In this document: piece after piece, positions 12,201-18,200 of the stretch
Numbering within the stretch: position 1 is the first letter of the stretch
How the letters are laid out: each line of letters opens with the position of its first letter
Assembly (NCBI RefSeq): GCF_040938485.1
Contig: NW_027272205.1
Coordinates: 186,001-250,000 of the forward strand
Reading direction: 5' to 3'
Length of the DNA: 64,000 bases
DNA from: Diadema antillarum
Taxonomy: Eukaryota
Notes under the pieces: generated by a model
Told to the model about the DNA's origin: nothing
Database searches by the model: none
What the model saw: only the letters and a program-made list of their open reading frames with translations
Made by a program: the position numbers and the translations under genes

Positions 12201-15200
12201 TGCTTTTCACGTCTGCAGTCACAGCGATGTAGTCTTTGCGGAACCTGCAAAGCACACCCAGAAGGCTATTCATCATATTTGGTCCCTGCAGCAAATTGTC
12301 GTTCAAGGACACACCTTGATATTTCGCAGAGCAGTCGAAAACCACACGGATTTTGTTCTTTCTAGGATGATACACACCTGTGTGTGGTATGTAGTTCACT
12401 CTCTTCTGGACTCCTAGACCCTCTGTCGGCACTCTCTCTGCATAGTTTTGGATGACATCATCCATGAATGCTCGGTAATCATCGCAGAACTGTTGGTTCT
12501 TCCTCAGTCTGGCTGACAACTGGTTCCATCTCTTGATTGCGAGGGGCTTGTTGACTGGGAGATTTGGCTCCTGAGCCTTGAGTGGCAATGGCATTTCGTA
12601 GTGCCCGTCCTCACATCTTTGAACACCCTTCTCCAGGATCTCCATGAACTTGGTCTCTTCCACTGAGTAGGGCTCTCCCTTAGAGTCTGTCTCCTTGAAG
12701 TCTTGTTCAAGGACCTGGAGGACCTTCTCAGCACTGAAAACCTCTTTTACCTTGCTGGAAAAGGTGAACCTAGGATGTTTCTCTGTCACTGTCATCCTAT
12801 TACAGACTCCTTCATCACTGGTTGCTGTCAGACAGACACTCCCAACAACTCCCCAGCCAAGGAGAGATCTCTGCGCATAGGGGTCGTCCTCTCCACCACA
12901 GATGATCTCCCTTGGCCTGATGGCTCTGGGACAATTGTTTCCAATGAGTAGAGACACCTCCACTGCAGGGTTATATGGCATCAGGTGGTTTGCTATGGGT
13001 GCAAGATGAGTCCAACGTCTCAGCACTTGGCCCTTTGGGATCTGGGAGCGCCTTGCAGGGACTTCGTCCCTGGTGAAGCAGTCTGGTAGCTTGATGGTGT
13101 GCTCTTTATTGAAGTCCAGGACCTCGAGACCATTGATTTTCTTACTTCTCACTTGTGCACTGTGGTGCATAGTGGTCAGTTGGAGTGTTGTGTCTGGTCC
13201 TTCAATGTCGAGCTTTTGCCGCAGTCCCTCAGAAATGAACCCGATATTTGATTGATCGTCCAAGATGGCGTACTGTAGCACTTCCCTTCCAGGATTACTT
13301 CTGTGCCTCACCCAGACCGGAACTATCATACAGTGCTCCCGACCATCCTGGTCTGGCAAGGAACACACAGTTGTGCAATTGGTTGAGCCCTGTGGTTTCA
13401 CATCCCGATGGAGACAGGCTAGGTGGGTTCCCTCACACACCTTGCATTTCCTTCTCTCTGTGCAATCTTTCACTCGATGGGCATCTGTTTTTGCACATCC
13501 CATGCACAATCCCTTTTGAAAGAAGAAGGCCTTCTTGGACTTGTATGAAACCTTCTGAAATTCTTGACATTCATCCAAGTGATGTGCCTGTTCGCAGTAT
13601 GGGCATGAGGAATATTGCCCGTGCTTTGTGTTTGGTCGGCTTGTTGTTCCAGATGTGGAGAATGTTCGCCCAGAGTTGCTGCTTGTGGTTCTACCAGATG
13701 CAGGTTTTGCCTGCACATCATGTCTCGGGCTCTCTAGCTCAGGCATGTTGGCCTTCTCAGCTGCCTCTCTCACAAAATTTGCAAACTCTGTGAATGTTGG
13801 ATAGCAGCATTTTCCACCTTGTGATTTTTTCTTCAGCACTACGTCCCGCCACTTCGAATCCAAATAGTGCGGCAACTTAGCCAAGAGCTTGGCGTTCTCT
13901 TGTGGGTAGTCCAGAATGCCTAGGTTGGGTACCATGACCTTGGCTGCAGTGACCTTGTCCAGAAAATCAGAGAACTCTCTCAAAGCTCTACCATCCCTGG
14001 CATTAAGTTTGGGCCACTTCTCCAGACGGTTCATGTACGAACAGCTTACTAGTGTGCTATCTCCATACCGCTCCTTCAGCACAGATCTGGCCCTCTGGTA
14101 TGCATCATCAGTTCCAAGGAGAAGGTAATGGTCGACCACATCCTTTGGTTCTCCCCTCACATATTGTCCAAGGTAATTTAACTTCGTTGTGGGATCTACC
14201 GGTTTCGAATCGATCAGCGCATCAAATGCATTATTCCACATCGGAAATTGGAGAGGATCTCCCGCAAAAACTGGAACTGTTATTTTTGGCAATTGACCAG
14301 ATGCAGCCAGCTGAAGACTGATGGCACCTTGTTGCCTGCTTGCATCAGCCATGTGCAACATACATCTTTCCATTGTACTGGAGATTCGATCCAACGCAGT
14401 CGCTGTTTGCTCTGATTCGGGTTGCTTCTCTGCGTAAATATGCGCTGTTTCCACTCGAACATGTGAAGGCGGGTTCTGCTGAGATGGCGCTTGATTCTGT
14501 TCTGACTGTGCATGATCCAAGAACTTTCTCAGATCATTTTCTTTCCCAGATTGCTGCTCTCCTGGCAACTCAGGCTGATCCATCCCAAGCATATCACCCA
14601 TCTCATTAACCACTCTCTGCACTGCTTCATTTTCTGCAATTTCTCTCTCCAATTGCAACTTCTGCAGCATTTCCTCCCCTTTCAGTCTCAGCATTTCTGC
14701 CTGCATTTCCTCATTCATTTTCCTCCTTTTTTCTTCCAATTGTTGAAGCTTGACTTGTCTTTCCTTTTCTGCAAAAGCCAACCTGGCCTTCAGGGCTGCT
14801 TCTTTCTTTTTGAGCTCAAACTTTTCGCTCTTGATTGAAGCTTTCGAAACGGAACTGACGCAGCTAATGTCACTCATCGCTGCTTCACTTCTATCTGAGG
14901 GTGATGCAGACATTTTGTTGCAATGGATAGCAACACAAGTTTGACACGAACAGAGGAAGTGCAGACTTCTGCACTGTATTGCAATTACTGTTCTTGCTTC
15001 GATAGATCGCCTTTCGATTATTATTGTGGCTGCCTCAGCTCACGAAGACCTCGTTTGCTGAGGAGTTTCGTTCTCTGTTATACGCCCTGTATTATTATTC
15101 GCCATAAGATTCAACAGACGACACTGGAAACACAGATATACGACTAAATCCTGTTTAATCCTTGATTCCAACTTGTCATCGACCTTGAGTGGAGATAATA

Positions 15201-18200
15201 ATCTGAAATAGATGTGATACAGACTCGCATATTCATACTTGTTTACCCTCTTGTAACAAGGTAATAAAACTGTAATACTAAAATCTGCACATATCAGTCT
15301 ATATTAAATGTTAACTTCATCATGTGTGAACGTACACTGATAATTCAAATTTAACTCTATATTTCCATGAAATAATAACCAAAATAAACTATCAAATAAT
15401 TTCTCTTATTTATGTCACAGCTTTCTGGCTTTGTTATCATAAACAGCATTATTACCATGAATTTAACTTCACTGTACTTATTGAACATTATAACAACATG
15501 TGGATATATGCTATCAAATAACCATCTGAATGCACCCTAATCAAAATAACTCTGACTCTCCCAACTAATTTACTGAGATATAATATAATCATCCAAACTG
15601 TTTTGATTTCCCATTGGGATTTGAATACCCACTAATGCTGATGTATTATACATATATGTATATATTCCTCTCATTTCTTGAACTAACTTCCTTCATCTGT
15701 TTGTGAGATTAATGTGTTTATTTGTATATCAAATAATATCATTATATCACTTGTAAATACAGAATGTTACACCTTTCATCACATTAGGTTTGTCACTCTC
15801 ATTAACTAATAACCTGACTACACAGAGTGCATGTAACTATAATTACTCTCTCACATGCCACAAAAGATGAGTAAACTCTATTATTACAGGCATGAAAGTG
15901 ACTGAGGATATTGAACATCACCTGTTTATCCCAGTGTTATTTCACTCTAAAATCTGTGATTATAAACGATGCTAAATCATGTGCATAATAATCACTGACA
16001 TCTATGCTAATTACTGACAGAAAGTTTGAGCACTACAATTAACACAGCAACAGCACTCACCTGATCTCGCCACCCATTACTCATATGCATGCACTACTCA
16101 TATACAAACAAAGACAAGCACTCATGGGAGCATATACATCCACCTGAATCACAACTCCTTTGTCTACCAATATCTTACATAGTTTGCATCATCTAACTAA
16201 CTTTCTTACAACATAGAAAGCACACATGGAGTATACAGTGACTACAAAGTGCATGTACTGTGTAACAATAAAGGCATTAAATGTCAGTTCTTACCGAATT
16301 CGGGCTTTGAAACACAGAGATCATCAAGTGAATGCTGTATAGAACTTTCTTATACGGTTTCCTCTGCTGCAATGCCTTTCTCTATACAGAAGTGCACAGA
16401 AAAGGGGCTCCTCCCCATTATACCAACCACCTTCACTGAGTTAAAACAAGGGGGTTATTATGGAATGTTTACATTAGCTGGGGACGGAGGGCTTTATCTC
16501 CTCCTTGGGTTTGCCTAGACTGACCATTTCAGACCTGTTTACGATAGTTAGTCTTGGCCTGTAACTTCACACAAAAACAATAAAATTGCTAAGACCTCAC
16601 TACACATAGCTGTAGTGACATAGTGAGTTCCCATTCTGGAGACAATGTACAGCGCATTGTGTTGTGGGAGGCAATAATTAAAATAAATATCAATCTTGCT
16701 GATACCAGTCCACTAAAAATTTGCAGAAACAGAGAAGCACTGCAAAATATAGAGCATAATAAAACAGAAATTTTGAATAACATTGAATGGTAATAATATA
16801 TGTGATATTCTAAATAAAGAATCAATATTCTGTCTCTGTACAATATACATTGCAGGATATAATATCCCACATTGTTTTAAAGATGTGCTACACATTAGAA
16901 TTAACAAACCATACATCTAGCCATCTTATGCTCATTTTTGTTACAAATTGTATGGCAAATACACTACATTTGCAATTTAATAACGAGTCAAGAGATCTTG
17001 TGCTATGCTGTTTGTACCTAAGCGACATGTAGAGAGAGTACACATTTGGGAGACCAAAGACTTCATATTCTCAGCTAATTTTTCCCTTCAAAGATCTCAA
17101 ATTCCCCCTTTCCAGGATTCATTTGACTATAAAAATGAGCAAACATAATGTATGAATCATCGTTCAGCTGGTTTTCACAAACACCACAGGAGTCATTCCC
17201 ACAAGTGTGACTGGATTAGCACTAGACTTGGTGAAACAGAAGGAACCCTTCATTAATTCCATCAACATGTCTCAGATCCTCCTTAGGAAAGATAAATGTG
17301 CTATAGTATTTGGCTCAAGAGCAACTCAGTGCAAGCCCACCATTGGTTTAATGATCAATATCCAAAGAATGCCATTCACTATAATAGCACCTTACACAGT
17401 ACCGGTATAACATCTTGCTCTTATAATTCAAGTCTCAATACAGTGTTACAGTATTTCTTCAGCTCTAAATACAAGTGTACATAACACTCTGATAATCATA
17501 ATAAAGAAACTATTAATCATTTGTTTAATGACACTTTCTCTACACTTCCAAACAAGCTATTAAGAAGCATCTTTCACTTTCTACAGATCTTTTAGTGTCA
17601 TCATCTATCAGATTTCAAGTTTACTTGTTTCAATTTCATTTCCACGGATGAAATACAGCCCATGTATCTAAGTCTCGGTACATAACAGAATTTATACAAC
17701 TGAAACACTATGCTTCACCTTTCCAGTGAGTGTAAGACAGGATAATATTATCATGAACCCTACACTTGTGACATTTGATATGTATGTAGTTCATGTGGTT
17801 TAGCTGTGTGGAGACATAATGCCCCCATGCATGTACCAGTTGATTTCGGCCATATCTAAATATCTGGGTTTGTTTTTAATCAGGTTTTAAGGTTATATGA
17901 TCGAAAACTGGATAGTACAGACTTTTACTTATTTATTTACTTTTATTTGCTCCCAACATACACTGTAAGTGGGTTACAGAGGGACAGTGTCAACTGAGAT
18001 ATCATGCAAGAAGCAATAGAATTACGGAGATTATACTGTTCAAGCTATGTGTTCTGGCACACAAACTCTCACAATTTGGGGGGGGGGGGATGAGAATGAT
18101 TTTCAAGGATCTGGATTCAAGGTACATGTACTTTATTGTCTGTTATCAAAAATAAATATGCAGAAATTTGCCTTACACTGCACAATTTAATGTGCAATGT

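Follow-up and report, generated by a model that had tools for sequence, protein, structure and literature searches.

The BEL/Pao long terminal repeat (LTR) retrotransposon on the minus strand of the window analysed in the present study, a stretch of 64,000 nucleotides of Diadema antillarum (contig NW_027272205.1, positions 186,001 to 250,000), most likely primes its own reverse transcription with a sequence assembled by splicing within its LTR, a reading to which we assign a probability of about 0.8. A preliminary description, made from the letters of the window, had suggested such self-priming by spliced RNA, and the suggestion, favoured by each of the proposed checks that was run, is strongly supported on comparative grounds by co-variation between the splice junction and the primer-binding site (PBS), by processed LTRs from which the intron is missing, by the lack of a transfer RNA (tRNA)-like source of the primer, and by a fossil of the priming reaction on contig C105.

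The RNA-sense sequence directly behind the 5′ LTR reads AUAAUAAUCGAA (15024-15013) and is without TGG. The donor TTCG/GTAAGA ends exon 1 at 16295 and the acceptor TTTCAG/ATTATTAT begins exon 2 at 15202, the slash marking the splice site. Joining 16295 to 15202 gives UUCG/AUUAUUAU (TTCGATTATTAT), which is complementary to 15024-15013 at 12/12 positions, the pairing ending at the LTR border. All letters on which the preliminary description had based its coordinates, splice sites and 12/12 pairing up to the LTR boundary were confirmed, as was the absence of TGG from the post-LTR sequence ATAATAATCGAA; two of its caveats, that GATTATTAT occurs again at 15993-15985 and that a further donor, CAG/GTGAGT, lies at 16061/16060, proved equally correct. 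When the same search with any GT and any AG was run with 300 other 24-mers of the element, 12 bp were reached in 0.3% of them, and the best score fell at offset 0 from the LTR border. The exon-1 match of 4 nt is weak alone, and the related family C562 holds three TTTG/GT sites; the weight of the case lies in the comparative data.

Family members on contigs C1694 (element A) and C451 (element B), which are 96-98% identical to the window element and are each interrupted by later insertions, have LTRs that lack exactly the 1092-nt segment 16294-15203 and read GAATTCG/ATTATTAT. In element A, the same junction is present in both LTRs, which are 98.7% alike, and the target site duplication (TSD) is near-perfect. 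A diverged LTR subfamily (approximately 72-78% identity) also includes both forms, L021 with an intron bordered by AATGCG/GTAAGAA and TTACAG/ATTGTTAT, and L027 with the precise junction AATGCG/ATTGTTAT. The GTAAGAA donor and TTTCAG acceptor are kept in all intron-bearing copies. As is typical of spliceosomal introns, the segment runs from GT to AG, its donor approaches GTRAGT and its AG is preceded by a pyrimidine tract, and its precisely excised form was found as DNA in the processed LTRs and in the C105 fossil. Precise loss from GT to AG in two lineages indicates reverse transcription of spliced RNA and fits neither deletion nor insertion. By sequence comparison, the processed LTRs show that the predicted junction is formed in RNA and reverse-transcribed.

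For comparison, LTR/PBS borders were taken from further BEL/Pao families in this genome and, through protein homologues, from other species, giving 14 elements of four phyla, from Diadema families, Lytechinus, Strongylocentrotus, Patiria, Holothuria, a shrimp and a sea anemone; the more distant Diadema families C129, C221, C111, C810 and C1099 lie outside this comparison. In all 14 elements, the junction, or a contiguous word in the case of intronless LTRs, pairs over 10-21 bp with the post-LTR sequence, and the elements form two classes. In class 1, TTCG/ATTATTAT of the window element pairs with ATAATAATCGAA, TTTG/ATTGTTAT of Diadema C562/C46 (gag approximately 42% identical) and of the C562-type element of the sea star Patiria pairs with ATAACAATCAAA, and TTCG/ATTGTTAT of Lytechinus pictus and S. 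purpuratus pairs with ATAACAATCGAA; the class also includes Logan contig L097 (CAAT/AATTGTCAT, 13 bp) and the intronless family C27, in which TTGTATTTTAT pairs with ATAAAATACAA. In class 2, AAGAG/TTTTCAC of C371 and AGAG/TTTTCAC of C280 both face GTGAAAACTCT, GGAG/TTTTCAC of C343 faces a sequence ending in CTCC, and exon 1 supplies 15 of the 21 bp of the C316 duplex; pairing extends over 10 bp each in the shrimp Penaeus (TGAG/TTTAAC) and the sea anemone Actinostola (CAAG/TTTTAC), and the intronless Holothuria element has the 11-nt contiguous word AGAGTTATTAC. The LTR introns of these elements share no sequence relationship, and their lengths lie between 126 and 1106 nt.

In the null test performed for each element with 300 other 24-mers, the observed length was reached in 0-1% of trials, and the best offset from the LTR border was 0 in 11/11 elements, the duplex ending exactly at the end of the LTR. 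Co-variation among family members and relatives had been named in the preliminary description as a check, and complementarity was indeed kept, through compensatory changes on the exon-1 and exon-2 sides alike. Junction and putative PBS co-vary across the compared sequences, with the predicted duplex always ending at the LTR border. Immediately 3′ of the duplex, each class has its own conserved bases, CU... or GG..., which fit a recognised cleavage site. The preliminary description had treated a single element; on the present comparison, the predicted design is not peculiar to that element and is conserved in BEL/Pao elements of several phyla.

Two candidates were set aside during this comparison. 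The supposed 5′ LTR region of the C284 element (L063) contained no LTR and was replaced by C2021 (L064), and an element of Styela (L098), with a contiguous match of 10/11, one mismatch and a broken open reading frame (ORF), was counted as weak. Two further observations concern the LTR/PBS border and the leader behind it. In L002 (G000:C1149, approximately 622780-622810) and in a twin on C87, a family copy that is otherwise normal has the 11-nt unit ATAATAATCGA tandemly duplicated precisely where LTR and PBS meet, as would result from out-of-register plus-strand transfer on a primer copy. The first 100-150 nt past the PBS contain extra full or partial copies of the PBS word in S. purpuratus (L088), Patiria (L089), L083, L085 and L098, with inverted copies as well in S. 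purpuratus; these resemble remnants of a PBS that was duplicated repeatedly, or may serve as alternative docking sites.

A 2065-bp insertion at C105:46583-48647 (L060:1584-3648), which is bounded by regular LTR ends and flanked by a flawless TSD, GTTAC, is a palindromic complementary DNA (cDNA). Read on the minus strand of the contig, which is the sense of the part comprising U3 (the unique 3′ region) and exon 1, it runs from LTR position 1 through U3 and exon 1 to ATTATTAT. Directly behind this comes TGTGGCTGCC, where the LTR end begins in reverse complement; the stretch leads back across exon 2 and approximately 700 nt of the intron, and a snap-back then takes the sequence to the LTR end again. 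The U3-exon 1 part shows 93.6% identity to the window element, the arms 98.7-100%. The 27-mer that reaches from exon 1 over the junction into the U5 complement (U5 being the unique 5′ region) is unique in the genome, occurring at C105 only; the search pattern needs the exon-1 letters, without which every normal LTR/PBS border would match it in reverse complement. The simplest reading of the fossil is that a spliced primer was extended on an intron-containing template, with subsequent snap-back and integration. On this reading, DNA synthesis started, at least once, at the 3′ end of the junction, exactly after the last paired base, on an intron-bearing template. The fossil also shows that the splicing state of a primer can be unlike that of its template and, because U3 is attached to the primer part, that the junction copy of the 3′ LTR (or a second RNA) primed in this event. 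A further site, G000:C750:2091839-2091862, matches exactly the exon-1 end followed by TTTTCAC and the complement of a C371-type LTR end, and could be another such fossil or else represent a family variant whose PBS is longer.

We propose the following order of events. The transcript, whose start site (TSS) presumably lies upstream of the donor, would be spliced within the LTR between the donor that follows 16295 and the acceptor that precedes 15202, and the junction UUCG/AUUAUUAU would anneal to the 12 nt abutting the 5′ LTR. The RNA may then be cut past the last paired U, on the model of Tf1 presumably by the RNase H of the element's own reverse transcriptase, and the fresh 3′-OH would be extended into U5 and R (the repeat region) to yield minus-strand strong-stop DNA. 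The polyadenylation site would lie in exon 2, and exon 2 beyond the cut would serve as R for the first strand transfer; it can act in this way because AATAAA or ATTAAA is present within exon 2 in six related families. The PBS would be recopied from the primer in each cycle, and junction and PBS would thus stay complementary while both drift. The intron would be kept if the junction copy that primes is not in the same splicing state as the LTR copy that is the template, and three forms of this may be envisaged: the 5′ junction primes and the intron is retained in the 3′ LTR; the 3′ junction primes on an unspliced 5′ leader; or spliced RNA primes an unspliced genome in trans. The C105 fossil favours priming by the 3′-LTR junction or in trans. 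Intronless copies, in which the primer word is contiguous, would arise on the rare occasions when doubly spliced RNA is used.

A rival form of self-priming dispenses with the splice: the RNA at the acceptor (UUUC-A-GAUUAUUAU) would pair with the PBS, or transcription would start at approximately 15203 as in Tf1, and the intron-like segment would merely be U3. The nine contiguous bases GAUUAUUAU do exist without splicing, the pyrimidine tract can supply A-U pairs across the bulge, and the intronless LTRs show that a contiguous word suffices. The caveat of the preliminary description that unspliced RNA can also pair holds in the window, with 9 bp plus a bulge, and fails in C316, where 15 paired bases belong to exon 1 and are located 339 nt away in the DNA. 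Furthermore, exon-1 bases co-vary with PBS positions 9-12 (C-G to U-A in C562; GGAG with CTCC versus AGAG with CTCT), exons 1 and 2 stand joined in the C105 fossil where priming took place, and processed LTR copies reveal transcripts spanning the donor, which makes priming by unspliced RNA very unlikely in our judgement. The short intronless LTRs of C27, Holothuria and Logan contig L093 could instead be taken as ancestral, with the 1.1-kb segment as an insertion that begins with GT and ends with AG by chance. Such an origin is hardly credible, given that segments of unrelated sequence and length (126-1106 nt) occupy the same position in echinoderms, shrimp and anemone, all with GT-AG ends and a pyrimidine tract, that the ends of the segment show no TSD or terminal repeat, and that both forms occur with precise boundaries inside single subfamilies.

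Long-range pairings of the 5′ leader with roles in cyclisation, dimerisation, packaging or translation exist in retroviruses, and the duplex might likewise be real and selected for RNA cyclisation, dimerisation, packaging or translational control, the primer being something unrecognised. The predicted fold of the window leader, which prefers another partner for the junction, is in keeping with this. Against such a role, the duplex end coincides in 11/11 elements with the LTR border, which by definition is the start of minus-strand DNA, the C105 fossil shows extension from that 3′ end, and there is no other PBS candidate; we consider a duplex with no part in priming unlikely. An incidental match of the junction, with a tRNA, a tRNA fragment or another small RNA of the host as the true primer, would agree with the profile of the ICTV, the international committee for virus taxonomy, which gives priming by host tRNA-Arg or tRNA-Gly for Belpaoviridae (PMC8742986), and with the AUAAYAAUC core common to several families, as a host primer predicts. 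A tRNA source of the post-LTR sequence had also been proposed for checking. The complement of the post-LTR 15-mer has six exact matches in the 1.75-Gb genome, five of which are PBSs of the family and one an AT-rich non-tRNA site, and with one mismatch allowed it has 199 matches compared to 439 for the reversed control, making it rarer than the control. ARAGORN found no tRNA in the window. The post-LTR sequence lacks TGG, and its complement has no tRNA-like source in the genome by 15-mer match, although the full tRNA gene set, including mitochondrial genes, was not scanned; on these grounds, tRNA priming was rejected. In addition, a single genome contains at least six distinct post-LTR sequences, each matched by its own LTR, and we regard a host RNA primer as a most improbable explanation.

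Several points weigh against priming by the spliced junction. The primer would be internal to the RNA, preceded by at least approximately 30 nt of exon 1 and leaving a 5′ overhang for plus-strand synthesis to handle. Elements with intronless LTRs would prime without splicing, and splicing would be required only in intron-bearing lineages. The window exon 2 is without a canonical AATAAA and has only AATAATAATA at that position. Mismatched copies exist, element B having ATTATCAT in its junction and L027/L064 pairing at 10/12, all of them in old, damaged copies. The duplex is part of the minimum free energy (MFE) structure of C562, C316 and Penaeus and is absent from that of the window element, C371 and Lytechinus; the window junction folds with the exon-2 word at 15098-15091 instead of with the PBS. 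Three sequencing runs of uncertain kind cover the intron in a DNA-like manner, without a 16295-15202 joint among their reads, a result that speaks neither for expression nor against it, and the C105 fossil is a single event.

The window element is complete and apparently intact. Its two LTRs (15025..16620 and 7300..8895, minus strand; TGTCAC at the start and GCCACA at the end, i.e. TGT...ACA) are each 1596 bp and 100% identical, and the insertion is thus very recent; the TSD CACTA is present upstream (16621..16625) and downstream (7295..7299) on the same strand, the same five bases at both ends. In the 5′ LTR, a putative TATA box, TATAAG, lies at 16349..16354, 59 nt before the exon-1 end, the relatives being without one. 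The last 4 nt of exon 1 (UUCG; 16295..16298), the 5′ part of the proposed primer, are those that co-vary with PBS positions 9-12 in relatives, and the GT-AG intron (15203..16294, from GTAAGA through the pyrimidine tract to TTTCAG) has homologues in other families and species. The first 8 nt of exon 2 (AUUAUUAU; 15195..15202) would form the 3′ part of the primer, with the predicted 3′-OH after 15195, and it is right behind this word that synthesis begins in the C105 fossil. The remainder of exon 2 (15025..15194), the R/U5 region and putative strong-stop template, has AATAATAATA at the place of the relatives' AATAAA and includes a PBS-identical word, ATAATAAT (15091..15098), which co-varies with the PBS (ATAACAA in relatives) and competes for the junction in the predicted fold. 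A PBS-core word is found in exon 2 more generally, 60-75 nt before the LTR end (GAATAATAATA at 15091-15098 in the window; GAATAACAAY in L072, L087 and L088), and co-varies with the PBS. Directly 3′ of the predicted cleavage site, at 15187-15194, is a CTCCA pentamer, present in one copy in the window and in up to approximately six among the family copies L002-L014. The proposed PBS, ATAATAATCGAA (15013..15024), abuts the LTR and is supported by junction complementarity, the null test and the co-variation.

The uninterrupted gag-pol ORF (9268..14913, minus strand; 1881 aa) is followed by the polypurine tract (PPT) region AAAGGAGCCA (8896..8905), which abuts the 3′ LTR and recurs ahead of the LTRs in Logan contigs L093 and L097. 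The 3′ LTR has a second copy of the intron (8569-7478; exon 1 end 8570, exon 2 start 7477). Pfam matches in gag-pol are Peptidase_A17 (Pao; PF05380; E 1e-47, full-length), DUF1759, DUF5641 and Integrase_H2C2, with the same domain set in gag-pol homologues, and the nearest database protein, at 97-98% identity, is labelled Diadema antillarum. The element is BEL/Pao because of these domains: Peptidase_A17, with the DUF1759 of gag, the integrase zinc domain and DUF5641 in one gag-pol, is accompanied by TG..CA ends and a TSD within the 4-6 bp range. Missing from this set is the PBS of the ICTV description, which matches a host tRNA at its 3′ end: there is neither TGG nor a tRNA-like genomic source. 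Such a PBS is a descriptive and not a phylogenetic feature, and BEL/Pao membership stands. The polyprotein is not that of a Ty3/gypsy chromovirus of the Tf1/sushi clade, its domains being of Pao type. Across species (window, L072, L087, L088, L089, L093 and L097), LTR termini and PPT are strikingly conserved, as TGTYRCTRCAG at the LTR start, GGCAGYCACA at the LTR end and AGGAGCCA before the 3′ LTR, while the rest of the LTR diverges freely. The Rfam scan of the LTR and leader gave nothing beyond a sub-threshold match to SNORA5, an H/ACA small nucleolar RNA, in the LTR intron (15397-15476, minus strand; 21.5 bits against a gathering threshold of 30, E 0.11), which is probably due to chance. Elsewhere, the window includes a tandem array at 25700-27913 of eight units of approximately 273 bp, two of them 99% alike and the others 61-65%. 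On another contig, two C562-type gag-pol copies in the same orientation, 7937 bp apart at G000:C46:1658170-1667030, suggest a tandem LTR-internal-LTR-internal array with a shared LTR.

Self-priming has reportedly been worked on in Tf1 by the Levin laboratory. It is established for Tf1 and predicted for the Tf1/sushi group of Ty3/gypsy (Tf1, Tf2, Maggy, Skippy, Cft-1 and sushi-ichi), and for the plant Tcn1 and the TAR Ty1/copia groups (PMC6317226, PMC6934838). Like Tf1, the window element has no tRNA PBS, and its own upstream LTR RNA is the exact complement of the approximately 11-12 nt abutting the 5′ LTR; the primer would presumably be freed by a cut at the end of the duplex and the PBS recopied from it in each cycle. 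In Tf1, the primer is the first 11 nt of the transcript and contiguous, whereas the intron-bearing LTR DNA does not contain the complement here, which is spliced from pieces 126-1106 nt apart in the elements compared. The complement is also probably not the extreme 5′ end of the transcript, because a first exon of 4 nt is implausible; the primer would thus be inside the RNA, in another superfamily, BEL/Pao, and with duplexes of 10-21 bp.

The ICTV profile of Belpaoviridae puts LTR length at 0.2-1.2 kb, describes an 18-nt PBS as the complement of tRNA-Arg or tRNA-Gly, and calls BEL/Pao replication both "poorly understood" and tRNA-primed, while the main survey of BEL/Pao discusses neither PBS nor introns (PMC8742986; PMC3118150). 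The window element resembles described Belpaoviridae (Semotivirus) in its Pao aspartic peptidase, DUF1759 gag, DUF5641, TG...CA LTRs, 5-bp TSD and single gag-pol ORF, and differs from the ICTV description in its 1.6-kb LTR with an intron and its lack of a tRNA PBS. Open-access full-text literature on self-priming, splicing or the primer in BEL or Belpaoviridae did not describe the design, although an older subscription paper may exist. Penelope-like elements retain introns, only some transcripts or copies being spliced. In the plant Ty3/gypsy element Ogre, an intron between ORFs persists, and only some transcripts are spliced (PMC6317226). The present intron likewise persists in an element that replicates via RNA; unlike the internal intron of Ogre, which regulates polyprotein translation, it lies in the LTR, occurs twice per RNA, and its removal would build a replication signal. 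Human T-cell leukaemia virus type 1 and bovine leukaemia virus have splice donors in R and acceptors in the viral body, producing subgenomic messenger RNAs. They share with the window element a 5′ splice site within the terminal repeat; in the window element, the LTR contains donor and acceptor alike, and the spliced product appears to relate to priming.

What is new here is a splice-assembled, internal, BEL/Pao version of the known self-priming principle, which is probably widespread. Furthermore, we lean towards the view that a large and ancient part of BEL/Pao, in echinoderms, arthropods, cnidarians and perhaps tunicates, self-primes with a spliced LTR junction and no host tRNA, the intron being kept by a difference in splicing state between primer and template. 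Annotation tools that rely on a tRNA PBS will mis-score such elements, for which the rule relating junction and PBS offers a simple diagnostic, and the LTR intron explains the unusual LTR length of these elements. These elements offer a clear instance of a spliceosomal intron stably retained in a retroelement over hundreds of millions of years, which raises the question of asymmetric or trans use of spliced and unspliced RNA. Priming mode is a defining trait of retroelement families, and the evidence points to a host-tRNA-independent strategy in which the primer sequence is not in the DNA and is created by the spliceosome. If true, reverse transcription in these elements would be coupled to nuclear splicing, and the textbook account of Belpaoviridae would be revised.

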